A DNA stretch of 64,000 nt, from the NCBI GenBank assembly GCA_002269645.1, contig NIVC01001804.1:1-64000 (forward strand), given 5' to 3'. Below the pieces are notes generated by a model. It was given only the letters and a program-made list of their open reading frames with translations. It was not told the origin of the DNA and did no database searches. The DNA comes from Macrostomum lignano. Taxonomy: Eukaryota. Position 1 is the stretch's first letter, and each line of letters begins with the position of its first letter. A program made the position numbers and the translations under genes. Shown one piece after another: positions 40,308-64,000 of the stretch.

Positions 40308-40955
40308 ATGGCTTTAGTCAACTCTGCTATTCTCGGTCTCTGCTTGCTGAGCGTCCTGCTCAGTTTCGTTCCAGCAGGTCGCGCATGCTTTGGCAAATCT
40401 CCCAGCTTCAAGGCTACTTACCGCACTACCTTTGATCGCTCTAATCCCCGGACAGAGATGAACTTGAACAGCATCATCAAGAAAACATTGATGCCAGCAA
40501 TGAGCAGCTGGCTTCGCTGCTGTATGCAAATGTCAGCAGAGATTTTCCCGGTAGTCACGTCATCGTGCTCGTCTACAACCCCATCGGCGGCGTGTCGAAG
40601 CACGAAAATCTGTTCTGCCCGTTTCAGCTGCACCTGACTCGCTATCGGGCTGAAGGGAAGAAGAACATTCATATTCAGTTGTCGAAAAACAGCGTCTTCA
40701 ATGCTGCCAGATGCTCAGAAGTGGATGTCCAGGCTGTGCCCTGCGGTGGACTTCTGCGGGGCTGTGAAGCTGGCTTCGGTCATAGACTATCGGACCAGCG
40801 ACCTGGCTTACAAGGCCAGTCCAGGCTCTCTGGCCATCGATGTGGGCTATCACGTCTACACGAGCTACGGAGTCATGGGGCAGTCATTCAGGATTGACAA
40901 GAGGCAGACTTGGCGTATTGAAAAGCCTGTTCAGCACATTCTTTTGTTTGGGTAG
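40308..40955 (+). pseudogene. Single-exon small secreted protein (~215 aa) with two compensating frameshifts (pseudogene or assembly error)
   Basis: Signal peptide MALVNSAILGLCLLSVLLSFVPAGRA. The protein-like reading moves to another frame at the A-run near 40483 (KK/NIDASNEQLASLLYANVSRDFPGSHVIVLVYNPIGGVSKH...KNSVFNAA) and returns near 40710 (DAQKWMSRLCPAVDFCGAVKLASVIDY...HILLFG*). Confidence 0.55.
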
Positions 40956-41579
40956 CCGGAATGTCCTGATCAACTAAAGCTTGAATTATACTGAAGTTCA
41001 CTGACTGGCTAATCAAAAGCTTTTAAATCAAAAAATATACAAGACATCTTTGGTGACATGGTTTTCCAACTCTTGTTGCATTTGAATTTGTTAGCGCGGC
41101 TCTGAAAAGAAAATACAATTTCATCAGCAAATCTCCACTTGTCTCCTCTCTGAAACCGCCCTAGAGGACCTGTTTCTCAAACTTAGCAGATCTTGTCTCT
41201 TTGCCATTCTTAGCAGATCTTCTCAATCTGCTCGGTTCCTTTAGGATCTTCTAAGATGGGATGTACATTTGTTTTGTTATTCATTTGGCTAAAGTGTCCT
41301 AGCTGAAATATATTTTATTTTATGACAAAATGGGAAAATAAATTTAGGAAAATATGCGATTCGAAGCTATAAAAAGATAATGGGCTCTCGGTGGTTGGGC
41401 GCTGAGCTGTGGAATTTTTCGTGCCGCGTTTCTTCAATGCAGTTCACGATCTGCTCCCCCATTTGCCTTGCTCTCACTCTGTGCCAAGCTTTTGTTTTGT
41501 TGCTCATCCCAGCAGCCTAGAATCGTGAAACCATGGAAAGCACCGCCTCTCTCTCTTGTCTCTCGTATCTCCCACGGAC

Positions 41580-41840
41580 CACTTGGTATCTCCCAGACGT
41601 ATCCCTAAACGTCTGATCGCGTACCTCCAGCTGTAGTTCCGAAGTGCTCATCAAGGAGTCACCAAGCAACCAATCCGGTTTATTTTGAGATGCGCAGGTT
41701 TTTCAGCGGCGATTAAACTTAAAGTTTAGAACAAATTTATTGTTTAAATATTTTTCTATTAACTACGAGCGTATTGAACTTTAAATAAAATCAATCACAG
41801 TTAGAAACTTTACGGAAACAATAAATAATATAAAATATAG
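41580..41840 (+). repeat. Interspersed repeat related to 62340-62600
   Basis: Shared tgctcatcaaggagt(c/g)accaagca core followed by tttcag(c/t)ggcga and an AT-rich tract. Confidence 0.4.
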
Positions 41841-42939
41841 ATAATCAAATAGGGTTAAGGCAGATCAACCTGAGTATAGATATCGCTTGAGCTGAAGAGC
41901 AAAAAAACAAAAACTGCGTTTGCGGCGCAAAGAGGGAGCAAAAATCGAATAAATAATCCAGAAAAGCACGTACAGGTATCGGGTTCGTCTTTGATCTGAA
42001 TTGGAAATCCTGTAAAGATAAAAAATTAGCGGCTAGATTATCTGAGACCATCAGAACGGTCTGATCTAAAGAGGGCACGGCAACACAAAACACGGCACAG
42101 AAAAATTTCGGCTGCTTGGATACGAGAAACTGGAGCAGTGCTTCAGCAACAAAACGATTGTTTGTCAAAGGCAAAACATCTTGATTACAAAGCTTTAGAT
42201 AATTTTTCTGGCTACTGGGCACCACATGGTCACTATATGCAGTTCGATATCATTCAATTCAGCCACTTGTTAAGTTTTCACCCTGACGAAACCAGCGGTC
42301 AATATTTCTCAGATCTCAGCCCCGAGTGACGCAATTGACACCACTCAAGCGGTTCTCCTCTGAACTGTGGGTGATGCAATTGGCGTCACATGGAGAATTT
42401 AATCACAGAAAGGTTTTGCTTCACAAATCAAAGCATCATTTTACCTTCAATTTCATTCGAACTGGAATTCACTTTATTAGACAATCGGAAGCTTAACTTC
42501 GACACTTATAGCTCTGTAAATGTAAATCTTCATTCATTTTAGAAAAGCCACTTTTCAATATGAACTCCAATTCATATCGGACAATCTGTTGACGCAACTT
42601 ATATAAACTCTGATTCACTTTCAATTTTGTCTTTTTAGTGCGTTAGAGTTTTTCAGAGCCAACAACTTATAGGCTTTCTTCCTAATAGAAATTTGTGTCT
42701 GCTGTCGATATTGAAAACGAGTTTGTCCAGAATGAATAGAGATTTACATGTACAGAGCTATAAGTGTCGAAGTTAAGCTTCCGATTGTCTAAAATAAATT
42801 GTAGTTTGAAGGAAATTGAACTTAAAATGGTGTCATGTACTCTCAGTTCTCAGACTTTATAAACTTGTTCTGGGTGGAAACTCTAACATGTTGCTGAGTG
42901 TACATATACATAGCGTCTCAGAAACCGCTAAAAAATTGT

Positions 42940-44817
42940 TCAGAAGCCTCTAAGCTTGTGAGCTCTTTCCGGATCGAAGCTGACTTGGCGTGAAAGCTGG
43001 TCAACTTTCTGTGGCACAACACGATACAGGCTGTTTCTCATCCAAACAGGGTTCCTCTGCAAGTGGTCGCTCACATTTGTCATGATAGTACTGAGGTCGA
43101 GCTCACGGAAGTTTTTCTCGATGAAATCGCAAACAGTCTGCACGTACAGCGAACCCGTGTTGATGCTTCTAAAGGCGACTGAGCCTGGACTGTTGGCGTA
43201 GCAGACCAGAAAGTCGCTCTCTGGGGTACAGACTGTGAGGTTGTACCTTGTTTCCTCTCGCGAATAGGAAGCAAAAGTTCGATCCTGGCGGCTTCCGCGA
43301 CCGGCCTGAATGAAGAACACCTTTGGCTTTCCTTCTAGGCTTCGGCAGACAGAGGTCTGTGATGCGATGGTAGTGGCGGTAAAGTCTTCAGCCTTTCAAT
43401 AGTGAATTCCAGTCTAGTCCAGACTTTTGCAAATGCGAGAAACCAATTCTTTTTCAGACAATATTACACTTTGTTTCAATATCATACTCGTACATTTCTA
43501 TACGGAGCTATTTGAATAACCCTATTATTGCATATATCTAGTAACCATAATAGAAGCTAAGCATGTATTTTTGGCTTACCTGAAACCTTTCGATCACTTT
43601 TCGAATTTCGTAGGGACACCCGTCCCTACCGTAGATGCAGTCGTGGCTGCCGTGCGCCATCAGGAAGCAGACAAAGCTGCCGTGCTTGGCAAGGTCTCGT
43701 GACTTTTTAATCTCACTGAGGAAATCATCCAACTGCTCAGTAGTAAGGTCTTTTTTTATCTTGACGATGAAGCGCAGCCTCTCGAATACCCGTTTCGCTT
43801 GTTCAACATCATGATCAGAACCCTTACGCTCTGTAATACTGAATGTGATGTCACTTCCGGACTCGTACCTGCTGATGTTGATGATGAGGCAGTAGCCTTG
43901 CGGGTCCGTCACTGGATAGAAGTCTCCGTCGAGCCTGGAATGCAGCAGACGCTCAATATACTCGTAATTTTTTATACTGACAACAAAAACATAAATTATG
44001 TAGTAGCACCTTGGTGGTTGATGTCGAACTATTTTGGCTCGCATAGCTCCGCTGAGGTTTCTAAAAAGTTTTTTTTCATTGTCAAAAGGAAATTTATTTG
44101 AACTATTCAATGAGTGAATATTTGTTAGCAGTTTTCACTGGACAAATAAAGTAACATCGACTCACAAATCTGCTTCCTCCGCTTTATCATCTCTTGGTTC
44201 TTCCGAATGGTCCGTGACAATTTTTCGCCTAAAATGGTCAAAAAGCTTTGTAGTCTATTAGCTATGCTTTCAGAAGCTGTGTGTGCTGTAGCTGTGTGCT
44301 GTAGCTGTGTGTGCTGTAGCTGTGTGCTGTAGCTGTGTGTGCTGTAGCTGTGTGTGCTGTAGCTGTGTGTGCTGTAGCTGTGTGCTGTAGCTGTGTGTGC
44401 TGTAGCTGTGTGCTGTAGCTGTGTGTGCTGTAGCTGTGTGTGCTGTAGCTGTGTGTGCTGTAGCTGTGTGCTGTAGCTGTGTGTGCTGTAGCTGTGTGCT
44501 GTAGCTGTGTGTGCTGTAGCTGTGTGCTGTAGCTGTGTGTGCTGTAGCTGTGTGCTGTAGCTGTGTGTGCTGTAGCTGTGTGCTGTAGCTGTGTGTGCTG
44601 TAGCTGTGAGCTGTAGCTGTGTGTACTGTAGCTGTGTGTGCTGTAGCTGTGTGTGCTGTAGCTGTGGGTGCTGTAGCTGTGTGTGCTGTAGCTGTGTGTG
44701 CTGTGCTGTAGATGCGTGCTGTAGCTATGTGCTGTAGCTGTGTATGCTGTAGCTGTGTGTCCTGAAGGAACTCACGGCAGTGCCAGAGGCTCGTTGAAGT
44801 AAATCTTGCCTTCGTAA
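42940..44817 (-). CDS. Caspase-family protein (peptidase C14A) with the catalytic Cys replaced by Gly; 5' end unresolved
   Basis: Exon ~43935-43580 encodes FYPVTDPQGYCLIIN...RKGSDHD...FVCFLMAHGSHDCIYGRDG. Exon 43356-42940 encodes SLEGKPKVFFIQAGRGS...ESDFLVCYANSPGSVAFRSINTGSLYVQ. Small phase-compatible upstream exons lie at ~44104-44010, 44228-44166 and 44817-44776. Confidence 0.85.
44275..44760. repeat. 13-15 bp minisatellite in a caspase intron
   Basis: Unit tgtagctgtgtgtgc. Confidence 0.9.
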
Positions 44818-45589
44818 CTAAAATTGCAGAGTGGAGTCTGAAGTCAGGGGAATAGAGGATGAGCGCCCTTGCTCCATGCTTCACTCTATGTTTTATCGAT
44901 CTTCATTCTGTTTAACTGTCGAGCTTGCAACTTTCCAATTCTTTACCGTAATAATACAGAAAAGTACTACAAAAACTGCCCCATTTTACGAGCGTAAGTT
45001 AAAACTATTTTTTCACAGCAAAATGCTTGCTGCGCTGAAGTCTCACCATAGACCGTATATTCCATGGGCCACTCACTATTAAAACTACTCGTATGTAAAA
45101 ATTAAACCACTTTAAAGCTCACTTTCAGGGAGGTTAATGACATAGATTTTATTTTCGGGATTTAATCGATCACTTTCCCGGACATATTGCAAGGATTATT
45201 GTATGTACCTAAATAAGCGAGCTTCTCTCTTCTCTTCCTTCGTGACTCGAGAAATTTCTTAATGAAATTTTGTCTATGGTAAGAATGTGGGGGCTTCGCC
45301 TCTACACCCCCAGCAGGGGCTTCGCCCCCACACCCCAATCCCCAACTTCAACCATAGACATACAAGTACCCCGAAAAAAGCTGGAAAAATCTTTAGGCCG
45401 ACCACAGTCGCTGAAAGTTTAAGTTCAGTAGCTGAGGGACATAGAAAGTATTTTTGCAATGGAGAAGAAATATAAATTTATTTCAGTTGCACGAAGATAC
45501 AGAAACTTCACAACCGCTAAAAAGACTGCCGTATATGAAAGTAAGTGAAAAAATTTGACACTTTTCTGTAAAAGCGGCAAACCTTTTAG

Positions 45590-46271
45590 GCAGACTTGAA
45601 TATGCCTCTGCTTCTGCTTCTTGGAAACTCAGAACTTTGTGGTCCTTGACGATGAGTTTTCCGATGACAGCTTGGTTGCCGAGACAGCAGTTTAGGTCAC
45701 GCAAGCGCTAATCTTTAATCAAGAACTAACAGAAGCCTTTAGTTGTTGGCACCATGATCTCACGCAGGGCCGTCTGGAGGTCATTGAACGACTTGCTTCC
45801 AGGTTTGTCTGGCGCCGCGCTATCTGCCGATTTTTCGTATAGAGCCGGCGACAGTCGCAGCAGCAAGACTTGAGCTCGTGCGGCTGGATCCCAGTTGAAC
45901 AATGCGGCTCCAATCTCAAAGCCAACGATCCAAATTGGCCGTCTCCTCGAGTCTTCCAACCTCAGACATGCCCGACGTTGGACTCCACTTTGGGTGACGC
46001 TCTGGTTATCACTCGGAGTTGCTCGTGACTGGGGGCTGCTTGAAGACACTGCTCCATTGCGGCTTGCAGAAATTGTAGCCGAATTGGTCCTTGCCTGTGC
46101 AAAAGACTTTGTTGGATCCCCTGCTGTCTTGGCTGGCTCCTTGCTCATTGCGTCAGGTTAGAATCGCTGCGACGCCAATACTACTACTGAGGCTGTGTTT
46201 ATTTGAGTTGCAGCTCGCAGCCGATAAACTACGTATATTTCTGCTCAGCCGTAGGCCGTGCTCCAGAGCTT
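45590..46271 (-). mobile_element. Truncated Ty3/Gypsy (Mag-like) LTR retrotransposon remnant: partial 5' LTR, PBS and frameshifted gag
   Basis: On the minus strand an AATAAA-containing LTR end is followed by PBS TGGCGTCGCAGCG (46177-46165) and an ATG at 46148. The translation ...WIVGFE...QVLLLRLSPALYEK...PDKPGSKSFNDLQTALREIMVP, then in another frame LRDLNCCLGNQAVIGKLIVKDHKVLSFQEA, resembles Gypsy gag. Confidence 0.65.
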
Positions 46272-48044
46272 TCTATCTTAATAAATCTAAATATACTAAA
46301 TCTCTAATATTTGTTTGTTTGTTTGTTTGTTTGTATGTTTGTCCATAACGCTCTAGAGATTGCAATTCTTCACCGATTTTGATCGCGTTTTCGTCAAAAG
46401 ATTCGAAATTGTCTAATAATAATAATTGTCTAATATGATTGTGTAAACAATCATAGAAGCGTCATGTAAACAGTCATAGAAGCGTCATGGAAGAATAAAA
46501 GAAGCGTCATGTAAAAATCAAAAGAAGCGTCATGTCAGACATGAAAGAAGTGTAATGTAAAAATTAAATGAAGCTATTGTGCTGTGCTGGGGAGACTTAC
46601 TGAGATGTCAAGGCTCACGGAGAATAACTGAGATTACGGAGGGGGGTTTCTGAGATGTCAAAGCAAAAGTCAGAAACTACTTCAAAGTACATGTACTTTA
46701 CTCAAATTTTTTATTACATTCTTTGTTGGCTCGCCACGGGGGGGCGCTGATAGAAGAAGAGTCATGTAAAAAAGAAAAGAAGCACTATGTATACATAAAA
46801 GAAGAGTCATGTCGAAGTTAAAAGATTCATTTGGGAATTGCTACGATGTCAAGGCTTGGAGGGAATCGCTATAGTGCTGTGATTCTTGAAGAAAGAATCA
46901 CTAAATTGTCAAGGCTTAGGGGAAAAGAATTGCTGAGATTTCAAGGCTTTTATAGGTTGGGTTAAAGTTAGGTTTAGGTCAGGTTTGGGTTGAGGGTTAG
47001 ATTTTAGCGGGTTTCAAAGTTAACAGGGGATTTTTCAGATATCGAGGTTTATGGGGGGCATTGCTGACATTTCAAGGCTTACGGGGGAAATAGCTGAGAT
47101 GTCAAGGTTCATGGGGGAATAAATGAGATGTCAAGGCTAAAGTCAGAAGCTACATGTAGTCTATTGAAAACTTTTTTTCATTATTTGTTGGCTCCTCACG
47201 GGAGGGAGGGATCGCTGATAGAAAAAGCGTAATGTAAAAAATAAGAAGCTTAATGTCGAAGTTAAGAGATTCATTTGGGAATCCCTACGATGTCGAGGCT
47301 TGCAGGGAATCGCTATAATGCTGTAGTGCTATAATGACTGTTGGAGAGAATTACTGAAATGTCAATGCTTTAGGGTTAGGGTTAGGGTTAGGGTTAGGGT
47401 TAGGGTTAGGGTAAGGTTAGGGTTGGAAGGTTGACAGATTTTTTTTAGATTTCAAGGCTTTTTGGGGGCATTGCTGAGATGTCAAGGGGGAAGTTGATAT
47501 GTTAAAGCTTGTGGGGGGGGAATTACTGACATATCAAGGCTTACAAGGGACTTCTGATATATATTGCAAAAAGATTCTACATGTACTTTATTACAAAGCT
47601 TGTACTGCATTTTTGGCTCCCCGACGCTAAGATACTAAGCTAAAAAATACTACTAGCGCTTTACAAACTTATGCAGATGTCAGGCTGTAGGGTTAGTGTT
47701 CGGGTTGGTATTAGGGTTTAGGTTTAGGGTTAGGTTCAGGGTTATTGCGTTAAGATTCGTGTTAGGGTTAGGGTTAGAGTAGCTTATAACTTAGCTCATG
47801 TAGCTTATTAAAAATGTTTATCATGGAAGCATCATGCAAAAACAATGGAAGCGTCATATAAAAATCATAGAAGCATCATGCAACAACCCATGGACAAAAT
47901 ATTGAATTTAGGGTTTTGGTTAGGATTTGGGTTAGTGTTAGAAGTTTGACAGGAGATTTTTTAAGATTTCAAGACTACATGTAGCTTATTAAAAAACGCG
48001 TATTGCATTTCTTTGGCTCCCCAACGGGGGGCGTAGATTGCTAG
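46272..48044 (+). mobile_element. Non-autonomous Helitron-like element with internal repeats and TTAGGG-like tracts
   Basis: Begins TCtatcttaataaa...(gttt)n...accgattttgat. Ends with a GC hairpin-like gctccccaacgggggg followed by CTAG (48041-48044) and then T. Several internal copies of the terminal motif; (TTAGGG)n at 47370-47425. Confidence 0.55.
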
Positions 48045-48269
48045 TTAGCTTCTAAATTATTATGAGCATAGTAAACTTCCAACTAAGAAAAATACATTAG
48101 CCTGTGTTCTGAATTTTTATGTATGGCCAAGCTACTACAAAAATGTGAAAAATGCCCACTCAGAGCAACTGCAGTCAGCTGCTCAATATTCAATCATAAT
48201 TTACAGCACATATAGTTTTCATGCATACATTCTCAGACATTCTCATTCTCAGTCGCCATGAAAACTCAC

Positions 48270-50222
48270 CCACGCAGCAGCTCAGCCAGTCTCCAGTTTC
48301 TCTTTTGTGTGGCCAAGGCTAGCGCAGTCCTATACTTATTGTTCTTCAGGCTCCAATCCGCCCCTGAGTCCAGCAGAACCTGACTGACGTGCTGGGGCGC
48401 CCAGCAGGTGACTGCCTGTATGAGGGGTGTGTATTCACACTGATTCCTCGCATTGGCGGAGGCTCCGGCAGCCAGCAGAGCGGAAGCTGCGGCAGAATTG
48501 CCATCTTTGACTGCATGATGCAAACAACTGTCAGCAGCAGTATTCGCACAGGTGGGATCACCAAGCTCCACCAGCTGCTTCCACAGAGCCTCATCACTCC
48601 TCCAAGCTTCGTTCATCGCAATATAACCCCGTCTGTCATAAGCATCCATCTCCACCAGCTTCATCCGATCCTCAGCATTGAGCTGAGCTACGCCCATCAA
48701 CGCGGTGAGACCCAAAAAGTCAGGCAGGTCGCAGCTGTCGCGGGTCGCTGCTCGTCGCAGTCCCACCAAGTCGCGCGCGTTCACCAGCCGCTGCAGCTTC
48801 TGTCGATCCGCCTCCTCCTGCAAAGACGAACGGAAACTTTGAGCACAGCTACTCAGCTGCTGCAACATCAGCACCGCAGATTCCACTCACCTGAGCTGTC
48901 AGACCGGAGATAGTGCCATATTCATCCACAACTAGCCGCATCTCCCTGCAACAGCAAAAATGAGCAGCGATGCGAATATGCAATTTTCTAAAATATGACA
49001 ATTCCGATTGACAAAAAATTTACTTTAATAAGGTCTAGATAATTTTTCATGATAAATTTAGTAAATGGAAATTCCTACTTATCTGAGCTGCTTACAGATG
49101 GAGTTTCCAAGAGGACTGCAGCAGCTCTGCAACAATCAGCATTGGCGAGAGCGCATCCGACTTCTCACACGCAGCTCATTTTCCATTTCTGCAGCATTAG
49201 TTTCCTTCCATCTCACAATGTCTCACAAAGCACTCACGCACAGCCTCCCAGTTCTCCATCTGCAGCTCAACCCACACACTCTCACTGCACACCGAGGCCC
49301 TACAGCTTCCATTCTTGACTGAGATCAACCGGCACCCCATTGGCTGGGAGGCAGCCAGCTTATCAAGCAGCGAACTGCTCACTCACCGCTTGATGTAGCT
49401 GGCCAGCTCTGAGTGGCCGCTGAGCCTCGCCAGTGCGGACGCTGTCCAATCTTCGAGATCTTTCAGTCTGAGCAGCCGCGACCTCTTCGAGTTTCTGTGC
49501 TGTCTGCATTCATTGAACCTGTCCTGCCTCAGCAGGTGCAGCAGGTGCTTGGCGCATTTCCAGCTTCCAGTCCGCGCCGCCTCCATCAGCGGAGTGGCGC
49601 CGTTGTCATTCCGCAGCCACTTCGCATCGAACGACAGCAGCGTCAGCAGCCGCAGGTGGTCCCGCCGGGCTGCCAGGTGCGCAGCCGTGTTGCCGTTCGC
49701 GTCAGCTGCCTTGGGGATTGCGCCCAGCTCAAATAAGTACAAGATGCACTTTTCAGTGTGCACGGGAGTCTCAGGAGCGTCGGCCACCAGCATGAGGACG
49801 GTCCGACGATCTGCATCAGCGCTGGTGACCAGCTGGCGCGTTGCCAGCCGCCGCACCTTGCCGAAGTCACCTTGGATGACGAGCTTGGCGAGAGTGTGGA
49901 GATCGGCTGGTGAGTCTCCGACGCTTTCCCGGTTGCTGGGGTCCGGCTTAGTGAGTTGCTGCAACTGCAATTAAAGCATCTCTAACCTAAGTGCAAATCT
50001 TAGCACTGAAGTATTTTAGGAGACTTGAATTTACGAGCGTATGAGCTACTGGAGTAGCTGAGAGATGACTAATTTATTACTAATTATTAGTTACTAATTA
50101 CAGATTACTAGTCAATTTCAATAACTTCAACTTACCGCTCTGTCAGAGAACATGGTTATTTTTTCGCTTTCTGACGAAGTGCTTGACGTGCTCAAAGAGC
50201 TTGAACTTGAAGAGCTGGACAT
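48270..50222 (-). CDS. Ankyrin-repeat protein (two ankyrin modules), paralogue A
   Basis: Predicted exons 50222-50136, 49964-49387, 48945-48891, 48817-48270 are phase-consistent, plus a probable tiny terminal exon near 48190. Ankyrin motifs DANGNTAAHLAA, NDNGATPLMEAA, DFLGLTALMGVA, SCLHHAV, YTPLIQAV. Confidence 0.78.
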
Positions 50223-51959
50223 GGCAAAGCGCAGGGTGCTTGTTGGCGCAGGATGGCTGGGAAGTTCGGCATTGGGGCGGGGCAGGGACCTCTGCGGCAG
50301 ATTTTATTGCTTTGGCTGCTCGCGGAGGACTGGCTGAGCGGCTTTGCTGTTCATCTCTTGCATTGTACTGAAGACCAGATAGGCAGGCTGCACAGTGCGC
50401 AATACGATGCATATTTTATGCTGTGCTGTGAAACAATAACTTCTCTTCTCATCTCACCCGTCTCTCTAATTAGCAACAGTCTTTCAAAAGCTGAGGTTAG
50501 CATTATCTAAAAATGGGCTTGCTGCCAGGACCATTAAATAGACAATGGGCAGGTATCCAATGGGCCGTTGGAAATTTAATTTTCTTCACGAATGCCAGAA
50601 TGTTTTTTGTAATATAAAACAACGAATGAACAAAATACGCTCGTAGTAGCAATTATAACGGTTAGAATAAATCGGCTTCAACGAATTATCACTACAATCA
50701 ATTTAAAGACGCCACAACCCTCCCACTCTCAATCTCCATCTCGTAGGCTAAACGTTTGCATTTTTCTCAGCAGGTGGTACAGTATTCTGACCTGTCGATC
50801 CAAAAGGGTGGCCAACGCGAACATCTGATAAGTTGACCCTGCAACCAATGCATTCCAGGCATAAAAAAGTTCGATCGCTCAATCTCGATTGGCTATTGTC
50901 GATTTAGGCTGCCCATTGTCGAGATCAGTATCTTACCAAATGGTATGTAGGTGTGTCATCGCTATTGGCTTGATTTGTGGCATCCTGACCTGACTCCATA
51001 TCCACAAAGAATTGTGTTGTGTCGTGTAACTTGACAGGCCAACTTCATTATAATTATTACGCTAATGTTTCTGGTATAACGTAAATGCTAATTATAGTAT
51101 TAATATTATTCCTGTCATTTACTTATACTGCCACTTTAAGTAGAGTAGTTGATAAAGTACCTGTACAATTTATCATTAATCACGCTACATCTTTGGCTCT
51201 TGAATTTATCGATCGTGCAGTTTCTCTAGCGTGAATAAAATATCGATCATGTCGTTTTTCTAAAATGCTAAATACACTAAAGACTAAAATATATATAAAG
51301 CAACTGTGCGCACCTAGAAATTTACTCTGCAACTCATCTGGAAACTTCAAGTCTCGGCTATACAACAAATTGCAGTTGAACGACAAATCAATTTCATCAA
51401 TATGGACTAAATTTCCACGAGTAGAAAGTGGTTAAAACCTGCTCCGGTTAGTTAGTTTTTGATGCCTTATCTGATTTTCCAACACTGCACATCTGTTTAT
51501 ATAGGCCTATGACATTTGAACTTTTACAAATCCTCTTGCTCTTTGAAATCTTTGCAGTTTGACGTGTGTATGCCGATGTCTATGGCCAGAAAGTCAGAGG
51601 TCACATATAACGGTCTCGAGGCGAGCGAGATGAGACTATACCTTTTAGTTTTAACAATTTTTTTGGACATTAGTGAAGTTAATTTAGTCATTAGTCAGCT
51701 CAGTCCTAGAAAAGTCATAGACTATAGACTATATAGACCATAGACTATAGTTAAGAAATGAAATCGATTTAGTCAAGTGCCACGTATTTAAACCTTTCCA
51801 TGACTTGATTTTAGTCAAAGTGAATTTTATTTAGTCATCATGGCGGCAGAGTTCATGGCTTGCAAAGTTTGGTTGCAGAGTTCATGGCTGAACTGTCTGC
51901 ATTGGTTGATGAGCCGTTCTGCCTTCTGCCGTTCATCAAGCCTGCAGCTGACCAAGTTG

Positions 51960-52677: not shown

Positions 52678-52679
52678 TG

Positions 52680-55062
52680 GTCGGACCAAAAGCAAAACTT
52701 CCACGCCGAGTCGCGGCTGCTCAGATGCCACATCACGAACTCCACAGTCGCTTCAGTCGCCGACTTCTCACGAGACCAAGCGATGCCTCTGCTTACCGAG
52801 TGACCTGAGCACGAGCTCACGACTCTCTCTGCAGTTTCTCGGTCATCAAACTTCAGGCAAGCCAGCGCTCTGAGAGCCTCCCGTGCTGAGAGGGCGCAGT
52901 CTGGCAGTCTGGCAATCAGCTCTGTGAGCGACTCCTGAGATCGCTGGCTGCAGTCACTGCGCGAGAGACGCACCAGACACTCTCTCACCACGTCGTAGAT
53001 CTGATAGTACTCGAGAGCACTGGACTTCGCGAGGGGCATCGGACTCAGATCCGGCAGGATTTGGAACGGGTGGAAGTAGAATGTGCCTGAGTCGCTCACA
53101 GGTCTGAGACTGCCGATGAACTGCTGCAGCAGTTGGGGCAGCCGATCGATTACTGTTCTCAGTGTGCTCATGATGCGGTCCAAATGCTGGTCCGCTCTCT
53201 CCTTAGCCGCACCCTTGAGGTAGATGGCCGCATCGCTGAGAAAGAAATGGTTCATGATGCGACCCCGAGATCGGTCAGGTGTGTCAGGTGTTTGTCCTGC
53301 TCTCGGCTCTTCTCCACACAGTCGAGCAGCATCTGCAGCGACTGTCTCGTGAGACTCACGAGGTTCTCCTTCTTCCACTGCTCGACCGGCGTCTCATCCA
53401 CCATTCGGAAGGTGATGGTCTTCACGTGGTAGGACTTCAAGCCTCGCTGATTGAAGCCATCTTTGTGACAGATGACCTTCTTGACCAGGTATTTGAGTGT
53501 GACGAACAGTTGGCCTTGCAGGGTAGTGAGACTTCGCAGCATCCGGTTCTCCAGGAAGCTGGTGCTCACGCGGAGCTCTTCGCCTCCTCGGTCAGGAGAG
53601 GCTGCGTACACCACGTGACAGGGCGATGAGTCGGAGGTGAGAACCTCCTGGAGAGCCTCCAGCACAGGATGGGGGATGTTGGAGATGCGGTTTGGCAGCA
53701 GCGGCGCGATGGGCGGGTAGCGGCAGAGACGGCATGCAGAGACATTGTCCAGCGCTGGCTTCAGTGTGCATCCGGGCGTCGGATAAGCAGGATTTGAGGC
53801 TGTAAAAACGATTCGGTTCCCGATCGGGAAAAATACAACTTTGAGTCTGTGCAGTGATGCTTTGGACTGAAATACCAAAACCGCTCAAACAAATGGCACG
53901 ATATTTGCAGCCACCCTAAACTCACTACGGAGAAGGTCTTTGTTACCTTAAAATTCTTTAAATTCGAGTTCTTCTTACCTAAAAGTGCAAAAAAGCTACG
54001 AGCTAACTTGCGTAATTTTTAACTGAATCCTCCGTAGCGTTGCTCCACTTTTACCAATGCTACTCAAACATGACACTTAAAATCTTGCCAAGTTTTCTTA
54101 AATTCTTGCCAGAATGGACTAATCCCAGCACACGGAACTCAAGGACATAATTGAACCGTTTGTTGTGAACCTTCTTAAACAAAAACTTCTACTGTCCATT
54201 TGCACTTTTAATATTGAATTATATTTTACCACTCCTCACGTGTTCTTTATTAGTTTTGCTGATGTTTTGCATCCCTACACTGCTTAGTTTCTGTAGAACA
54301 CTTAAACAGTATCATTACTTTTCTCTCGTACGAGTTTGCCACCGCTTCTTATCATTTTACATCAAAGCTACATATTAATCCCAACTCCTTGCCTCCGATT
54401 ATAAAATGCAAATGTATCACCTCTATCCTAACTATTAACAAGCTTTGTTTGAGCATGACTTCAGATTTCAGAATTTCATGCTTAAAAAAGATCCAGAGTT
54501 AAAAGTCCGCAGGTTGCAACAGCTTGCACATAATAAATGCATGTTGCCAACACAGACCGTCAGGACAGTCAGGCTCTTGTTTAGATCTGCTTACTGAGCT
54601 TAGCTATACTATCGCATACAGAATGTTCTACACCAATGCTTTACACGCTAAAAGCAAACGTCTCTAGCAATCACTAACTGAACTATTAGACCATCTCATT
54701 CCCAAAGAGAGAACTCACCGAATCCTGAACACTGAATGTGCCCGTTCACCAACTCGTGCTGCTCCGGAGCTCCATCGCACTCGCACAGGCCTCTCTGGTG
54801 GTATTCTCGGCCGGGAGTCAACTCTATCACATCAATATCGGAATTGGCGTCAGTTCTGCCGTTCAGTGTCGTCAAGCTGTTGCCCCAGCCTTCTGAGTAG
54901 CTGCCGACGACAAAGTATGAAGGGTTTCTCAGTCGACTTCTTAGAATCTGCTGCAGGGCATCAGCAGCCGCGCTCTGCAATGCGGCTCGGGATTCGGTGA
55001 AGCCTGACTGCTCCAGTGCCGAGTGAAGCTGCTCGCTCAGCTCTGAGTCGCTGGGACTGCAT
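52680..55062 (-). CDS. Mab-21/cGAS-like nucleotidyltransferase (cGLR) domain exons, with one frameshift near 53292
   Basis: Exon 55062-54719 has VVGSYSEG...NSDIDVIEL. The exon from 53799 has ALDNVSACRLCRYP, PCHVVYAAS, LRVSTSFLENRMLRSL, FVTLKYL, LKSYHVKTITF. After a 1-nt shift the frame continues TPDRSRGRIMNHFFLSDAAIYL...WKFCF. Confidence 0.8.
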
Positions 55063-55983: not shown

Positions 55984-58031
55984 CCAAATTGTGACTGTTT
56001 TTGTGGCTCTTCCACAGCAACTGTATTTTTAGCCACTTCTTGAAGATTACTGTGCTCAACCTTGGCGTCAGCTTGTGCTTTGATGAGTGAGCTCACAACT
56101 TGGTGGTGACCAATCTGTGATGCAATGTAGAGAGTTGAAACGCCTTGGATTTGTTGAAGATTGACGTAAGCTTGTGCCTTGATGAGTGAGCTCACAACTT
56201 GGTGGTGACCATACTGTGATGCAATGTAGAGAGTTGAAACGCCTTGGATTTGTTGAAGATTGACGTAAGCTTGTGCCTTGATGAGTGAGCTCACAACTTG
56301 GTGGTGACCATACTGTGATGCAATGTAGAGAGTTGAAACGCCTTGGATTTGTTGAAGATCGACGTCAGCTTGTGCTTTGATGAGTGAGCTTACAACTTGG
56401 TGGTGACCATTCTGTGATGCAATTAGGAGAGGTGAGCAGCCATCGCTTCGTTGAAGATTGACGTCAGCTTGTGCTTTGATGAGTGAGCTCACAACTTGGT
56501 GCTGACCTTGCTTTGATGCAATGTAGAGAGGTGACTCGCCAGTGTTTCGTTGAAGATTGACGTCAGCTTGTGCTTTGATGAGTGAGATCACTACTTGGTG
56601 GTGACCTTTCTGTGATGCAACGTAGAGAGGTGAGCAGCCACTGACTTCTTGAAGATTGACGTCAGCTTGTGCTTTGATGAGTGAGCTCACAACTTGGTGG
56701 TGACCAAAATGTGATGCAATGTAGAGAGGTGACTCGCCAGTGTTTCGTTGAAGATTGACGTCAGCTTGTGCTTTGATGAGTGAGCTCACAACTTGGTGGT
56801 GACCTTGCTGTGATGCAAAGTAGAGAGGTGAGCAGCCATCGCTTCGTTGAAGATTGACGTCAGCTTGTGCTTTGATGAGTGAGCTCACAACTTGGTGGTG
56901 ACCATTGTGTGATGCAATTAGGAGAGGTGAAGCGTCTTGGATTTGTTGAAGATTGATGTCAGCTTGTGCTTTGATGAGTGAGCTCACAACTTGGTGGTGA
57001 CCTTGCTGTGATGCAATGTAGAGAGGTGAGCAGCCATCGCTCCGTTGAAGATTGACGTCAGCTTGTGCTTTGATGAGTGAGCTCACAACTTGGTGGTGAC
57101 CTTGCTGTGATGCAAAGTAGAGAGGTGAGCAGCCATCGCTCCGTTGAAGATTGACGTCAGCTTGTGCTTTGATGAGTGAGCTCACAACTTGGTGGTGACC
57201 ATTGTGTGATGCAATTAGGAGAGGTGAAGCGTCTTTGATTTGTTGAAGATTGATGTCAGCTTGTGCTTTGATGAGTGAGCTCACAACTTGGTGGTGACCT
57301 TGCTGTGATGCAATGTAGAGAGGTGAGCAGCCATCGCTCCGTTGAAGATTGACGTCAGCTTGTGCTTTGATGAGTGAGCTCACAACTTGGTGGTGACCTT
57401 GCTGTGATGCAAAGTAGAGAGGTGAGCAGCCATCGCTCCGTTGAAGATTGACGTCAGCTTGTGCTTTGATGAGTGAGCTTACAACTTGGTGGTGACCTTG
57501 CTGTGATGCAAAGTAGAGAGGTGAGCAGCCATCGCTCCGTTGAAGATTGACGTCAGCTTGTGCTTTGATGAGTGAGCTCACAACTTGGTGGTGACCCATC
57601 AGTGATGCAATGTAGAGAGGTGAAGCGCCTTTGATTTGTTGAAGATTGACGTCAGCTTGTGCTTTGATGAGTGCGCTCACAACTTGGTGGTGACCATTTT
57701 GTGATGCAATGTAGAGGGGTGAATAGCCATCGGCTTCTTGAAGATTGACGTCAGCTCGGGCTTGAATGAACATTTCAACAATTTTGTCTTTTCCCATTGC
57801 ACACGCAAAGTGAAGCGGCGAGAATGTCATCTCATTGATTCTGAAGAGCCTATCAACGTTAGAAGGAATCTGCAGGTATCGTGAAATTTTTGTTTCATTT
57901 TCGAACATAACGGCTTCCAGGATCTCCTGCTGATCAGTACCATCAAGGCCCTCGCTTTGGCCTGCGGACCTGCCGAAGGTCTGCTTCAGAACTGCTGCAA
58001 TCGCTGTCAAGATTCTCCAAAGAGCTTCCAT
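55984..58031 (-). CDS. Ankyrin-repeat exon (18 near-identical 33-aa repeats); probable exon 1 of an ANK-cGLR gene
   Basis: ATG at 58031; repeats of xSPLY(I/F)ASxxGHHQVVSSLIKAQADVNLQxxxG; ends TTT GG|GTAAGT (phase 2), matching the phase-2 acceptor at 55062. Confidence 0.9.
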
Positions 58032-58466: not shown

Positions 58467-61400
58467 GGCCATGACTTTATATTCGTCAGAAATGCACACT
58501 ATCCAGCATTCATGGCTGTTCGATAGCAGCAGATCTAGGAAGGAAGATATAGAAGCGGCAGACAGAGGAGGGTGGAAGGTCTAGAAGCGGCAGACAGAGG
58601 AGGGTGGAAGGTCTAGAAGCGGCAGGCAGAGGAGGGTGGAAGGTCTAGAAGCGGCAGACAGAGGAGGGTGGAAGTTCTAGAAGCGGCAGATAGAGGAGGA
58701 TGGGAGGTCTAGAAGCGGCAGGCAGAGGAGGGTGGAAGTTCTAGAAGCGGCAGGCAGAGGAGGGCGGAAGTTCTAGAAGCGGCAGGCAGAGGAGGGCGGA
58801 AGTTCTAGAAGCGGCAGGCAGAGGAGGGCGGAAGGTCTAGAAGCGGCAGGCAGAGGAGGGTTGTAGGTCTAGAAGCGGCAGGCAGAGGAGAGGGTTGTAG
58901 GTCTAGAAGCGGCAGACAGAGGAGGGTGGAAGGTCTAGAAGCGGCAGGCAGAGGAGGGTGGTAGGTCTAGAAGCGGCAGACAGAGGAGGGTGGAAGGTCT
59001 AGAAGCGGCAGGCAGAGGAGGGTTGTAGGTCTAGAAGCGGCAGACAGAGGAGGGTGGTAGGTCTAGAAGCGGCAGGCAGAGGAGGGTTGTAGGTCTAGAA
59101 GCGGCAGACAGAGGAGGGTGGTAGGTCTAGAAGCGGCAGACAGAGGAGGGTGGAAGGTCTAGAAGCGGCAGGCAGAGGAGGGTGGTAGGTCTAGAAGCGG
59201 CAGACAGAGGAGTAGCTGGGGATAAAGTATCCATTGGAAAAATAACCCCAACCCCCCTCCCTCAAGATCGATACCAGTGTCTTGGAAGGCGCAATATTTT
59301 TAAAGCTCCGAGAGTGGGTCTGGCCGACTGGATAGAATAGAAGGACCTCCTAGTTTGCATTCCAGTAGTTTTTGCTGCAGCAGAGATACAGGACTTGCCC
59401 CCAAGGAGTTGGCAGGCGGAATGTTGTACAGTTGTGCTTTAATCTTCTTTCTGTGCTCATCCGGCTGTCTGCTCACCATCAGCAGCCTGTTCAGCGATCG
59501 CTGGATGCTGGTTGAAGTGGCTCTGAAGGAGACGGACTACTAGCACACACCCTAACAATTCCTATACAGTAGCAGAACAAACCTCCAGCTGACATTTTTA
59601 TGTATAAAGTGGATTCAGGTTTCAAGCTTACAGCCGATCTGAACACGGTATACTGTATACGATTTCTTATCTGACTTCTACCAGTAAGCAGTTGAGGTTG
59701 CTTGCTCTGTATTTCTGAATTAAATGCCTGAATATTTTATTTGCCAACATGTTGAGACACGTAGAATCAATGCTTAACCATGCATTATGAATTAATAAGC
59801 AACGTACATGTGAGCTGCCTTTTGATAGTGAAGTGCGAGCTTTGCCAAATACCGTAAAATTAGGCCTTGGGCACTGCAGTGTCAGTAGTTATTAATCAAA
59901 TCATTAATCGAATCTGTACCATGTCGTTCACAGCATCTGAGAATGAACCGGGGAGGCAGTTAACATAAACTTGTCTTAGGCTGTGGAGTATTTACTTTCA
60001 TGCTGTCTACTTTGAGTACAGCGCAAAGTAGATTAGCAGATTATTTCTACTTTTATTTTCTTACTTCCTTTTTGCGTTTTTATTCAACAATACGCTCTTG
60101 TTTGATTTCCTAAATGTCTTTGCTTTCATTAGAGTTTTATACTTGAGTAACGTCGGAACGAGAATGAATTCAGACAATAAATGAAACAATACTACAGCCA
60201 CAGTACTGTTACCTGCAAAAACCTGCTAAGGCAAGTTGGTCATCTATCTATCTTCCATCCGGAATGCTCCCATACTCAAGTCCGCCTTTCTATCTGTTTC
60301 ATAGAAAGTCTCGTCCCACATTTGGCTCATGGAAGTCTGTTTTGTCAGGCAGTTCTATAGTTCTATGTCAGGCATATAAAGGCCATGACTTTATATTCGT
60401 CAGAAATGCACACTATCCAGCATTCATGGCTGTTCGATAGCAGCAGATCTAGGAAGGAAGATATAGAAGCGGCAGACAGAGGAGGGTGGAAGGTCTAGAA
60501 GCGGCAGGCAGAGGAGGGTGGAAGGTCTAGAAGCGGCAGACAGAGGAGGGTGGAAGTTCTAGAAGCGGCAGATAGAGGAGGATGGGAGGTCTAGAAGCGG
60601 CAGGCAGAGGAGGGTGGAAGTTCTAGAAGCGGCAGGCAGAGGAGGGCGGAAGTTCTAGAAGCGGCAGGCAGAGGAGGGCGGAAGTTCTAGAAGCGGCAGG
60701 CAGAGGAGGGCGGAAGGTCTAGAAGCGGCAGGCAGAGGAGGGTTGTAGGTCTAGAAGCGGCAGGCAGAGGAGAGGGTTGTAGGTCTAGAAGCGGCAGACA
60801 GAGGAGGGTGGAAGGTCTAGAAGCGGCAGGCAGAGGAGGGTGGTAGGTCTAGAAGCGGCAGACAGAGGAGGGTGGAAGGTCTAGAAGCGGCAGGCAGAGG
60901 AGGGTTGTAGGTCTAGAAGCGGCAGACAGAGGAGGGTGGTAGGTCTAGAAGCGGCAGGCAGAGGAGGGTTGTAGGTCTAGAAGCGGCAGACAGAGGAGGG
61001 TGGTAGGTCTAGAAGCGGCAGACAGAGGAGGGTGGAAGGTCTAGAAGCGGCAGGCAGAGGAGGGTGGTAGGTCTAGAAGCGGCAGACAGAGGAGTAGCTG
61101 GGGATAAAGTATCCATTGGAAAAATAACCCCAACCCCCCTCCCTCAAGATCGATACCAGTGTCTTGGAAGGCGCAATATTTTTAAAGCTCCGAGAGTGGG
61201 TCTGGCCGACTGGATAGAATAGAAGGACCTCCTAGTTTGCATTCCAGTAGTTTTTGCTGCAGCAGAGATACAGGACTTGCCCCCAAGGAGTTGGCAGGCG
61301 GAATGTTGTACAGTTGTGCTTTAATCTTCTTTCTGTGCTCATCCGGCTGTCTGCTCACCATCAGCAGCCTGTTCAGCGATCGCTGGATGCTGGTTGAAGT

Positions 61401-62238
61401 GGCTCTGAAGGAGACGGACTACTAGCACACACCCTAACAATTCCTATACAGTAGCAGAACAAACCTCCAGCTGACATTTTTATGTATAAAGTGGATTCAG
61501 GTTTCAAGCTTACAGCCGATCTGAACACGGTATACTGTATACGATTTCTTATCTGACTTCTACCAGTAAGCAGTTGAGGTTGCTTGCTCTGTATTTCTGA
61601 ATTAAATGCCTGAATATTTTATTTGCCAACATGTTGAGACACGTAGAATCAATGCTTAACCATGCATTATGAATTAATAAGCAACGTACATGTGAGCTGC
61701 CTTTTGATAGTGAAGTGCGAGCTTTGCCAAATACCGTAAAATTAGGCCTTGGGCACTGCAGTGTCAGTAGTTATTAATCAAATCATTAATCGAATCTGTA
61801 CCATGTCGTTCACAGCATCTGAGAATGAACCGGGGAGGCAGTTAACATAAACTTGTCTTAGGCTGTGGAGTATTTACTTTCATGCTGTCTACTTTGAGTA
61901 CAGCGCAAAGTAGATTAGCAGATTATTTCTACTTTTATTTTCTTACTTCCTTTTTGCGTTTTTATTCAACAATACGCTCTTGTTTGATTTCCTAAATGTC
62001 TTTGCTTTCATTAGAGTTTTATACTTGAGTAACGTCGGAACGAGAATGAATTCAGACAATAAATGAAACAATACTACAGCCACAGTACTGTTACCTGCAA
62101 AAACCTGCTAAGGCAAGTTGGTCATCTATCTATCTTCCATCCGGAATGCTCCCATACTCAAGTCCGCCTTTCTATCTGTTTCATAGAAAGTCTCGTCCCA
62201 CATTTGGCTCATGGAAGTCTGTTTTGTCAGGCAGTTCT
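58467..62238. repeat. Near-identical ~1.9-kb tandem duplication (58467-60356 and 60381-62238), each copy starting with a 32-bp minisatellite
   Basis: Offset is 1914 at the start and 1882 after the array (one 32-bp unit tctagaagcggcagacagaggagggtggaagg fewer in copy 2). Identical ORFs at 59355 and 61237; 24-nt junction filler at 60357-60380. Confidence 0.92.
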
Positions 62239-62339
62239 TTACGTTTGGTAGCAAATACTCGTTACATGCAGCTCGTGTTTCGTTTAAATGTACTCATATA
62301 TACGATGTGAGCAGTCCTGCTCATCGGCTCACTTTTCCC

Positions 62340-62600
62340 TGTAATTTTTGTCTCCGTCTCTCGTATGCATCTCAGGCGTACTGTAGCTATTGCCAACTGC
62401 TCATCAAGGAGTGACCAAGCAGAAAGCAATCTAATTTTGTCTGGATGAGCAGTATTTCAGTGGCGACAGAACTCAAACAAAATACTGGTTTATTATTTAA
62501 AAGCTTTTGATTAACTACTTTAGTTTAGAAGAATTAGTCACAGGGTTATAAACTTTACACGGAAACGAAAAATATCATAAAAATAAAATGAAACGATAAT
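62340..62600 (+). repeat. Interspersed repeat related to 41580-41840
   Basis: ctgctcatcaaggagtgaccaagca...tttcagtggcgac followed by an AT-rich tract. Confidence 0.4.
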
Positions 62601-62859
62601 TGAGTACTTGAAGGTTAAGCAGATTGACTTGAGTAGACATCAGAGTCAAATAACCATTAGTCATATTCAGAAGGTAACACGATCGGTGTTTGAACAGCAG
62701 AAAAGTGTCCACATTTATCAATCAAGCTGCCAATACGAGTATATCAAATATTCCATCATTAAAGACAGCTCCGTGACATCGCCGCTACCTGAAGAAACTC
62801 ACAGCGGCTTCAAAGGCTAGTCGAAGAACTTCTTGTCTTCGTACCTGAAAAAAGAAGTG

Positions 62860-63167
62860 CAGAGTATAAACTCAGAGTGTGGATTTCAAATTGCAGAGTG
62901 TAAACTCGGAGTGTGGATTTCAAATTGCAGAGTATAAACTCAGAGTGTGGATTTCAAATTGCAGAGTATAAACTCAGAGTGTGGATTTCAAATTGCAGAG
63001 TGTAAACTCAGAGTGTGGATTTCAAATTGCAGAGTGTAAACTCGGAGTGTGGATTTCAAATTGCAGAGTATAAACTCAGAGTGTGGATTTCAAATTGCAG
63101 AGTATAAACTCAGAGTGTGGATTTCAAATTGCAGAGTGTAAACTCAGAGTGTGGATTTCAAATTGCA
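62860..63167. repeat. 34-bp minisatellite (~9 copies)
   Basis: Unit gcagagtataaactcagagtgtggatttcaaatt. Confidence 0.9.
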
Positions 63168-63323
63168 CTATAGTTCTTACTGCCCATTTATACTACAAAA
63201 ATTAAAAAATTCCACTCAGAGCAACTGCAGTCAGCTGCTCAAAATTCAATGATGAGCAATAATGCTTTTCAGCGATTTCGAGCATAGGTCAGAGAGATAT
63301 TCTCAGTTGCCATGGAAACTCAC

Positions 63324-63945
63324 CCACGCAGCAGCTCAGCCAGCTCGCTGTTTTCCGTCTGTGTGGCCAAATCCAGCGCAGTCATGCCGTCTCTGTCCTT
63401 CAGGCTCCAATCCGCCCCTGAGTCCAGCAGAACCCGACCGACTGCGGCGGTGGTGGCGGGGGGCGCAAAGATGGCTGCCAGCATGAGGGGAGTCAATTCA
63501 CAGTATCCTCGATCGTTCCTGGCGTTGGCGGAGGCTCCGGCAGCCAGCAGAGCGGAGGCTGCGGCAGAATTGCCACCGAAGCCTGCCCAGTGCAGGCAAC
63601 TATCAGACCTTGAATCCACACAGGTGGGGTCACCCAGCTGCACCAGCTGCTTCCACAGAGCCTCATCACTACACGAGCTGTTCAGAGCTGCCCACATCAA
63701 CGCGTTGAGACCACATCTGTCAGGCAGATCGCAGCTGCCGCGGGTCGCCGCTCGCCGCAGCCCCGCCAAGTCACCCGCCTCGGCCAGCCGCTGCAGTTCC
63801 TTTCGATCCGCTTCCTCCTGCAAAGGTGAGCGGGAAATTTGAGCACAGCTGCTCAGCTGCAGCCGCATCGGCACCGCAGATGCCGCTCACCTGGACTGTC
63901 AGGCCGGATAATGAGGCATTTTTTCCCACAACCAGCCGCATCTCC
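63324..63945 (-). CDS. Ankyrin-repeat protein, paralogue B (3' exons; 5' part lies beyond the right edge)
   Basis: Exons 63945-63891 (EMRLVVGKNASLSGLTVQ) and 63817-63324 (EEADRKELQRL...DRCGLNALMWAA...SCLHWAG...LTPLMLAA...DGMTALDLA...ELLRG), with the same intron positions as paralogue A. Confidence 0.8.
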
Positions 63946-64000
63946 CTGTAACAGTAAAAATGAGCAGCGAATTCGCAATTTTCCATATCAGACAACTACG

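Follow-up and report, generated by a model that had tools for sequence, protein, structure and literature searches.

Do caspase, ankyrin and cGLR sequences that lie close together in a genome belong to one defence pathway, or have they been brought side by side by duplication and decay? This question is raised by a stretch of 64,000 nucleotides from the free-living flatworm Macrostomum lignano (contig NIVC01001804.1, positions 1 to 64,000), which as a whole is referred to as the window below. In a preliminary description made from the raw letters, the right 24 kb of the window appeared as a cluster of five immune genes, namely a small secreted protein, a caspase without its catalytic Cys, two ankyrin genes and a cGLR, that is, a Mab-21/cGAS-type nucleotidyltransferase, with N-terminal ankyrin (ANK) repeats. 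We consider it probable that this part of the window is instead a birth-and-death stretch, in which genes from two families that are expanded in this lineage, and whose kinds are already known, have been duplicated and have decayed. Both families share one design, in which ankyrin repeats at the N-terminus are joined to an effector domain, and the locus would contain a Cys-less ANK-caspase gene, a recent cGLR pseudogene and an orphan ankyrin exon, together with a non-coding duplication, satellites and inserted DNA. In a region prone to rearrangement, the cGLR copy seems to have come to lie between two ANK-caspase copies in tandem; this would be the reason why the two families stand side by side, which then gives no indication of a shared pathway. 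While the caspase, ankyrin and Mab-21 sequences and the duplication of the proposed cluster are present, its gene count, the intactness of its genes, the secreted protein and the mobile elements did not stand. The main value of the analysis is corrective: the raw-sequence reading had split one fusion gene into three and had taken what is probably a pseudogene for a sensor, and the apparent defence island arose from this.

For comparison, eight paralogous loci of M. lignano were used, each with flanks of ±10 kb (~190 kb in total), four of them holding Mab-21 genes (L001, L003, L004 and L005) and four ANK-caspase genes (L002, L006, L007 and L008). The reference proteins were P0025, a UniRef protein of 411 aa with ankyrin repeats and a Peptidase_C14 domain, P0032, the ANK-caspase in L002, and P0001, the closest intact cGLR paralogue, in L001. 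Every homologue that the homology search returned for the Mab-21 or the caspase part is from M. lignano itself.

One gene for ankyrin repeats and caspase

The caspase and the neighbouring ankyrin sequence had been taken for separate genes. They belong to a single multi-exon ANK-caspase gene, which runs on the minus strand from 49964 to 42940 in the order ANK-A (probable), mini-exon, ANK-B, a 4.3-kb intron, p20 and p10 (Table 1). P0025 is 100% identical to the ANK-B, p20 and p10 exons and joins ANK-B directly to the caspase, and in the paralogue P0032 one gene model comprises ANK-A, ANK-B, a linker and the caspase. Splice sites are canonical and phase-compatible at all junctions, and the reading frame is intact. 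The caspase domain itself is recognized in its p20 and p10 parts (Pfam PF00656) in two minus-strand exons.

ANK-A probably belongs to this gene too, as an exon further upstream, because it is paralogous to the corresponding exon of P0032 in L002. The 5' end is uncertain, since the first coding exon of the L002 type, which begins with MGSAAS, was not found when sought upstream of ANK-A in 49978-52500, nor was any other exon with a start codon; the P0025 model begins at the ATG of the mini-exon. In L002 this first exon (P0032, BOX15_Mlig007583g1) encodes MGSAASSLNNT, which resembles an N-myristoylation signal.

From 40994 to 49978 the window is colinear with L002 at 75-90% identity. Colinearity is broken within the ANK-B-to-p20 intron (44826 corresponds to L002 7197 and 48134 to L002 6907), where the window alone carries a 3.3-kb insertion at 44827..48133. 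It holds short tandem repeats, a 140-aa open reading frame (ORF) at 45726-46148 and (TTAGGG)9 at 47370-47424, an interstitial telomere-type repeat, and no Pfam domain was found in it. One piece of 99 bp (46316-46414) recurs in L002 and is the sole piece of inserted DNA that recurs in another locus. Shortly after the caspase stop codon, outside the L002-colinear blocks, lies an inverted repeat (42477-42561 and 42708-42792) with 85-nt arms that are 88% complementary and 146 nt apart; it looks like a miniature inverted-repeat transposable element or a hairpin insertion.

Loss of the catalytic cysteine

That this caspase lacks its catalytic Cys was borne out. The p10-side exon encodes the pentapeptide QAGRG in place of QACRG, so that of the catalytic His-Cys dyad the His is present in its motif (FLMAHG) and the Cys is replaced by Gly. 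The Gly codon is GGT at 43302-43300, where L002 has TGT. A single change from TGT to GGT would have turned the catalytic Cys into Gly, and the product would therefore be unable to act as a cysteine protease. As the ~25 other M. lignano family members that were checked all keep QAC at this position, the change appears to be private to the window copy; a Cys loss that is conserved across relatives is thus not what is seen. We lean towards the view that the Cys-less ANK-caspase is a young, dying copy.

Alternatively, the gene may be a selected pseudo-protease and a functional analogue of cFLIP in flatworms, that is, a tandem duplicate of a caspase-8-like initiator that controls active ANK-caspase paralogues through heterodimerisation, with the rest of the region as debris. 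Its ORF and splice sites are intact, the His motif is preserved, as are Q and R around the mutated position, and the stretches RKG and FRS look conserved by eye, as do the residues that would be expected to line the substrate pocket in caspases generally. The ratio of nonsynonymous to synonymous substitution rates (dN/dS) against L002 is 0.34-0.36 in the caspase exons (0.36 in p20) and 0.7-1.25 in the ankyrin exons; as a pairwise value, the former mostly reflects the history before the mutation. The gene stands in an array with other ANK-caspase copies, and its closest relatives outside Macrostomum, among those checked, are DED caspase-8-like proteins; CFLAR in turn adjoins CASP8 and CASP10 and has lost the catalytic Cys. 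By analogy, the copy may have been retained as a decoy for its active paralogues, with which it would pair as cFLIP does. The occurrence of Gly in one copy only among the ~25 relatives nevertheless does not point to retention over long times, decay is demonstrable in the sister copies, and the first coding exon known from the paralogue was sought upstream without success. We therefore regard a selected pseudo-protease as rather unlikely and prefer the dying copy.

The ANK-cGLR and its lesions

The ANK-cGLR consists of three exons with canonical splice sites that run on the minus strand from 58031 to 52678, with a 683-aa ankyrin ORF followed by Mab-21/cGLR exons. Its presence had thus been recognized correctly, whereas its description as an intact gene does not hold. 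Membership of the cGLR family is indicated by fold and by motif. In the AlphaFold model of P0001, built with a 14-sequence alignment (pLDDT, the predicted local distance difference test, 73.9), Foldseek gives the cGAS structures 8eae and 4k96 as top matches (E value 1e-4, template modeling score ~0.48 on the target), and MAB21L1, MiD51, MB21D2, OAS3 and bacterial CdnE as further structural matches. The cGAS/Mab-21-type fold is therefore seen on the predicted model of the paralogue, and the window ORF matches Mab-21_C barely above the cutoff. The motif G[GS]...[DE]h[DE] with a third acidic residue is present as GSYSEGWG...DIDV in exon 2 and PALDNV in exon 3; in the family alignment A1, G49, S50, D71 and D73 are nearly invariant, with a consensus PAxDxV. 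The third catalytic Asp is assigned tentatively, from its position on a predicted strand. A profile search of the Mab-21 alignment against sequences of the PDB was dominated by ankyrin matches and returned no alignment to cGAS.

Two lesions interrupt the coding sequence. Compared with the L001 paralogue, which is 97% identical there, 4 bp (GACA) are deleted after 53293, so that GACAGACAAACA becomes GACAAACA and a stop codon follows in the nucleotide alignment at 53254-53252. In accordance with this, a tblastn search with P0001 switches from frame -1 to frame -3 in exon 3, and the near-invariant family motif IMxHFFLxDAAxYL is put out of frame. In addition, residues 482-591 of P0001, the last ~110 aa, have no tblastn match anywhere in the window, and the homology to L001 breaks off at a microsatellite (Table 1). 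A complete, uninterrupted cGLR coding sequence is not present. Against L001, dN/dS is 0.45 in exon 2; in exon 3 it goes from 0.61 ahead of the frameshift to 1.07 behind it (14 nonsynonymous to 4 synonymous changes), a rise that rests on 18 substitutions and is suggestive, not statistically significant. A small intron that would rescue the frameshift was rejected, as the paralogue is 97% identical around this point and codes without interruption there, and no GT...AG pair is present. From this we conclude that the ANK-cGLR has probably become a pseudogene in recent times, provided that the assembly is correct at the lesion points.

If the assembly were at fault, the 4-bp deletion, the 99.8% identical duplication described below, the 3' break or the T-to-G change in the caspase would be errors, and both genes would be intact and active. 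Indels and collapsed or expanded repeats do arise in repeat-rich assemblies from long reads, the deletion lies in the context GACAGACA, and the break lies at a microsatellite. On the other hand, a 4-bp loss is unlike the usual 1-bp homopolymer error, and the missing C-terminus is absent from the entire window and not just shifted. The flanks of L001 and of the window differ on both sides, and QAGRG is also found in P0025, a protein that is not marked as encoded by the window and so probably, though not certainly, stems from another assembly. Errors of this kind are improbable as an account of the locus, and we retain the view that a real copy was disabled.

Along 52678-55126 of the window, identity to L001 9926-11812 is 91% overall and mosaic, ranging from ~88% in exon 2 to 97% over the final 750 bp, and this pattern suggests gene conversion between dispersed cGLR copies. 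The cGLR intron of the window also carries a 560-bp insertion relative to L001 (54101-54660).

The ankyrin array of exon 1 deserves separate mention. In its 17 repeats, all amino acid variation falls on the repeat positions 3, 4, 5, 7, 12, 15 and 16, while the framework is invariant. The proportion of synonymous differences (pS) is 0.046 in the framework versus 0.32 at the variable codons, where the ratio of nonsynonymous to synonymous proportions (pN/pS) is 1.27. The variable positions are, as we take them to be, the target-binding positions that are randomised in designed ankyrin proteins. This pattern is consistent with a binding surface that diversifies on a scaffold under concerted evolution.

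A second ANK-caspase copy without caspase

The second of the two proposed ankyrin genes is a paralogue of the first, with 81-83% nucleotide identity between 48245-48970 and 63299-63970. The paralogy thus stands and the separate genes do not, as one is an exon of the caspase gene and the other an orphan ANK-B exon, whose product is 56% identical to P0025, 65% to P0032 and 77% to P0026. The region 63172-63997 matches L002 6104-6927. The L002 sequence that follows, 3.2 kb including the caspase exons, is represented in the window by ~530 bp, which include a 34-bp minisatellite (62858-63167) and lead to a relic of the sequence downstream of the caspase exons (Table 1). As this relic shows, the second copy has lost its caspase exons by deletion; a second caspase match was found nowhere in the 64 kb. 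The orphan exon was also considered as 5' exon of the cGLR, and this was rejected, as the ankyrin ORF of the cGLR starts with its own ATG right after stop codons.

Decay is also seen elsewhere in both families. The caspase of L002 has an in-frame stop within its p20 exon (L002 8506-8874), at which the annotated protein P0032 (BOX15_Mlig007583g1) ends, and the cGLR copy of L001 has no ankyrin exon within 10 kb upstream.

Why the two families are adjacent

If the families were functionally linked, they might be expected to meet again, and recurrent co-clustering of Mab-21 and caspase-like genes had been named beforehand as a check. In none of the eight other loci do a Mab-21 gene and an ANK-caspase occur together, neither in the four with Mab-21 nor in the four with ANK-caspases. 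Tandem copies of the same family are found in L002, L004 and L008. The flanks of L001, which holds the closest cGLR paralogue, are unrelated to the window on both sides, which suggests that the cGLR segment was inserted between the two tandem ANK-caspase copies by dispersed duplication. The caspase, ankyrin and cGLR genes and exons between 40 and 64 kb all lie on the minus strand, as had been stated from the raw sequence. The view of a fast-turnover locus was supported: tandem and dispersed duplicates, deleted caspase exons, the 3.3-kb intron insertion, the frameshifted and truncated cGLR and satellites at breakpoints are all found here. A duplication-prone, repeat-rich region is the simplest explanation of the adjacency. 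The gene structures, their lesions, the paralogy and the absence of recurrence in the loci sampled are direct observations; that function was lost, and in which order the events took place, is inferred from them.

Several points weigh against the reading of duplication and decay. The caspase domain is moderately constrained against its L002 paralogue and the gene has neither stop nor frameshift, which is the reason why a selected pseudo-protease keeps some probability. The cGLR retains an uninterrupted ankyrin exon of 2 kb and undamaged splice sites, so that the disabling would have to be very recent or the 4-bp gap an assembly error, and the few substitutions after the frameshift limit what their dN/dS can contribute. 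The sample for recurrence is small, with eight other loci and ±10 kb each. Under uniform random placement, the chance that a Mab-21 gene lies no more than 3 kb from a caspase gene is ~1%, a rough value obtained from the family sizes and a genome size that we take to be ~0.76 Gb, and for this reason the adjacency, although it does not recur, is not pure chance; a non-random association is possible.

These points do not restore a working defence island, in which an ANK-cGLR sensor, ankyrin adaptors or decoys, the pseudo-caspase and a secreted effector would act in one pathway and be held together by shared function. Both gene families are indeed of the immune or cell-death type, the cGLR and the caspase lie within 3 kb on the same strand, and the fast-evolving ankyrin modules (dN/dS 0.7-1.25) and the hypervariable residues of the cGLR at binding positions are as expected of recognition modules. 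But the ankyrin adaptors are exons of caspase genes, with one set serving as the caspase prodomain, the sensor is frameshifted and truncated, the effector is an ORF without support, and the families do not co-occur in the eight other loci. The sensor-adaptor-effector pathway is thus not supported, and we give the defence island very little credence. Hardly more credible is a modular ankyrin surveillance, in which related, hypervariable ankyrin sensors would be coupled to either caspase or cGLR output and the Cys-less ANK-caspase would be a retained decoy or regulator; if true, it would provide an analogue of cFLIP in an animal without FADD and DED signalling, and the locus would be a snapshot of module exchange between families. 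The copy with the private Cys-to-Gly change and the cGLR's hypervariable array of ankyrin repeats are convenient points of departure for the question whether these ankyrin modules are recognition domains.

Other open reading frames, repeats and inserted DNA

The small secreted protein, proposed as effector, is a 118-aa ORF with hydrophobic N-terminus at the left end of the region. It has no Pfam family, no homologue at E<=0.01 among 5.8 billion proteins, even when concatenated with neighbouring frames, no tblastn match in the paralogous loci including L002, and no gene with this product is on record; as a supported gene it was rejected for these reasons. ATG-initiated ORFs of at least 118 aa arise in 35% of Markov simulations of 14 kb of non-genic sequence, and 3 were observed versus 0.4 expected, so that some of these ORFs may be relics of old coding sequence. 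A frame that overlaps or adjoins the ORF on the plus strand (40638-40952) has a sub-threshold Pfam match to a Zc3h12a-like NYN ribonuclease (E value 0.0018, 18.9 bits, cutoff 23); no homologue of it was found, and it may be a decayed coding relic.

Remnants of Gypsy, Helitron-like and Crypton elements had also been proposed. Pfam recognised no family at all, and hence no reverse transcriptase, integrase, gag, Rep-helicase or tyrosine recombinase domain, in any stop-to-stop segment of at least 45 aa outside the genes (E<=0.1) or in the ten longest ORFs (E<=1). The Crypton candidate, an ORF of 225 aa, matched nothing in Pfam, NCBIfam or the PDB sequences and corresponds to no recorded gene, and its AlphaFold single-sequence model (pLDDT 37) is too poor for a fold search. 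The inserted DNA at the locus is real, and its type is not recognisable by protein domains.

The recent tandem duplication is real and young; it is non-coding and holds no Pfam domain. Each of its copies starts with ~20 repeats of a 32-bp minisatellite (Tandem Repeats Finder arrays 58542-59212 and 60456-61094). Micro- and minisatellites are abundant throughout 40-64 kb according to tandem repeat scans, and Rfam and tRNA scans of the same region gave no match.

The left part of the window bears other genes, as had been described, with PH-domain and Sema-domain exons between large satellite arrays. The arrays in positions 1-40000 (for example 37060-39400, 18470-19400, 12680-13310 and 10150-10980) yield spurious ORFs of up to 690 aa in several frames and on both strands. 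Because satellite arrays produce such very long spurious ORFs, ORF length by itself is a poor guide to genes in the M. lignano genome. Among the comparison loci, L004 holds two tandem Mab-21 (cGLR-type) genes without ankyrin exons (7361-11903 and 14628-17125), beside a DM9-domain gene and the clathrin heavy chain.

Table 1. Position and supporting evidence of features in the right part of the window
Feature	Position	Strand	Evidence
118-aa ORF with hydrophobic N-terminus (proposed secreted protein)	40281..40637	+	ORF only
ANK-caspase, p10-side exon and stop codon	42940..43356	-	Peptidase_C14 E 3.7e-13; P0025 residues 318-411 100%; acceptor, stop codon
ANK-caspase, p20-side exon, His motif FLMAHG	43580..43934	-	Peptidase_C14 E 1.7e-18; acceptor CAG/G, donor CAG/GTAAGC
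ANK-caspase, ANK-B ankyrin exon	48270..48817 (ORF 48266-48886)	-	Pfam Ank_2; P0025 residues 17-200 100%; donor GG/GTGAGT, in phase with p20
ANK-caspase, mini-exon of 55 nt, encodes (R)EMRLVVDEYGTISGLTAQ, holds ATG of P0025 model	48891..48945	-	exact P0025 N-terminus; flanks ...tgcag/ and /gtgagt
ANK-caspase, ANK-A ankyrin exon, probable upstream exon	49387..49964 (ORF 49383-49970)	-	83-85% aa identity to L002/P0032 ANK-A; phase CG/G to mini-exon
225-aa ORF (proposed Crypton), ends in (GACT)n microsatellite	51840..52517	+	ORF only
(GACT)44 microsatellite at cGLR 3' breakpoint	52500..52677	.	homology to L001 ends at 52678
ANK-cGLR, exon 3, region of putative third catalytic Asp, Mab-21_C, part of C-terminal extension	52678..53799	-	Pfam Mab-21_C 24.9 bits, cutoff 24.1
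ANK-cGLR, exon 2, nucleotidyltransferase core GSYSEGWG...DIDV	54719..55062	-	85-88% identity to P0001, P0002, L001; canonical splice sites
ANK-cGLR, exon 1, open 683-aa ankyrin ORF, 17 near-identical 99-nt repeats	55984..58031 (ORF 55980-58031)	-	Pfam Ank E 1e-126; 99-nt array; donor GG/GTAAGT
Non-coding tandem duplication, 1.88-kb unit, copies 58574-60362 and 60456-62245	58574..62245	.	1,790 bp, 99.78% identity, 3 mismatches, 1 gap
Relic of sequence downstream of caspase exons (second ANK-caspase copy)	62390..62640	-	70.7% identity to L002 10159-10412
Orphan ANK-B exon, second ANK-caspase copy	63324..63817 (ORF 63320-63874)	-	Pfam Ank_2; donor sequence same as copy 1

Comparison with known systems

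ANK caspases of platyhelminths have been described in Schistosoma by Lee et al. 2014 and also by Horkan et al. 2024 (PMC11463336), who consider them restricted to parasitic flatworms and mention for M. lignano only a kinase-bearing one. The free-living M. lignano encodes a sizeable set of caspases with N-terminal modules of varied architecture: besides the ANK-kinase-caspase P0066 and the Ras/Roc-caspase P0059, there are the ANK-caspases P0034, P0040, P0045, P0118 and P0157 and the loci L002 and L006-L008, and caspases with N-terminal ankyrin or other modules are found at NCBI as PAA46841.1, PAA56209.1, PAA61143.1, PAA63380.1 and PAA47029.1. The ANK caspases of M. lignano thus bear on the published view of a specificity for parasitic flatworms (PMC11463336). 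Like the published proteins (PMC11463336), the window gene has an ankyrin prodomain in place of DED or CARD and a relationship to DED (caspase-8-like) initiators; it differs in that it comes from a free-living macrostomid and has lost the catalytic Cys, and the likeness is one of architecture. No parasitic-flatworm sequence is among the named top matches, and the nearest relatives outside Macrostomum that were checked are DED caspases. Such side observations, on ANK caspases in a free-living species and on ankyrin variation at binding positions, may outweigh the cluster claim in worth.

The ANK-cGLR family and its architecture are already known and catalogued for M. lignano (PMC9980059). Li et al. 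2023 (PMC9980059) reported cGLRs fused to ankyrin or TPR repeats, stated that most flatworms lack cGLRs, and list in their supplementary tables several M. lignano ANK-cGLRs, for example PAA86972.1 and PAA45980.1, of which PAA86972.1 is also among the cloned constructs; their main text names no M. lignano ANK-cGLR as active. With the animal ANK-cGLRs of that study, from M. lignano and coral, the window gene shares the N-terminal ankyrin repeats followed by a Mab-21/cGAS-type nucleotidyltransferase with GS...[D/E]h[D/E], a third Asp and a cGAS-like predicted fold, and the M. lignano cGLRs cloned there have GSFAEAWGNSL...DVDV where the window has GSYSEGWGNSL...DIDV. In contrast to them, the window copy is frameshifted and truncated at its 3' end, and the nucleotidyltransferase core is short and has a low-confidence model.

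The Cys-less ANK-caspase resembles cFLIP (CFLAR) and other pseudo-caspases as a caspase-8-like paralogue that lies beside related caspase copies and has lost the Cys with the remaining fold kept. Unlike cFLIP it has no DED, and its Cys loss, which relatives do not share, appears confined to a single recent copy; a regulatory role would be one by analogy.

A parallel to the locus as a whole is provided by birth-and-death families of innate immunity, such as NLR, R-gene and VLR-like arrays. Here as there, duplicates occur both in tandem and dispersed, pseudogenes are frequent, the recognition modules are built of repeats and evolve fast, and the surroundings are rich in transposable elements and satellites. 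It differs from them in that two unrelated effector families stand side by side, with only one or two possibly functional members.

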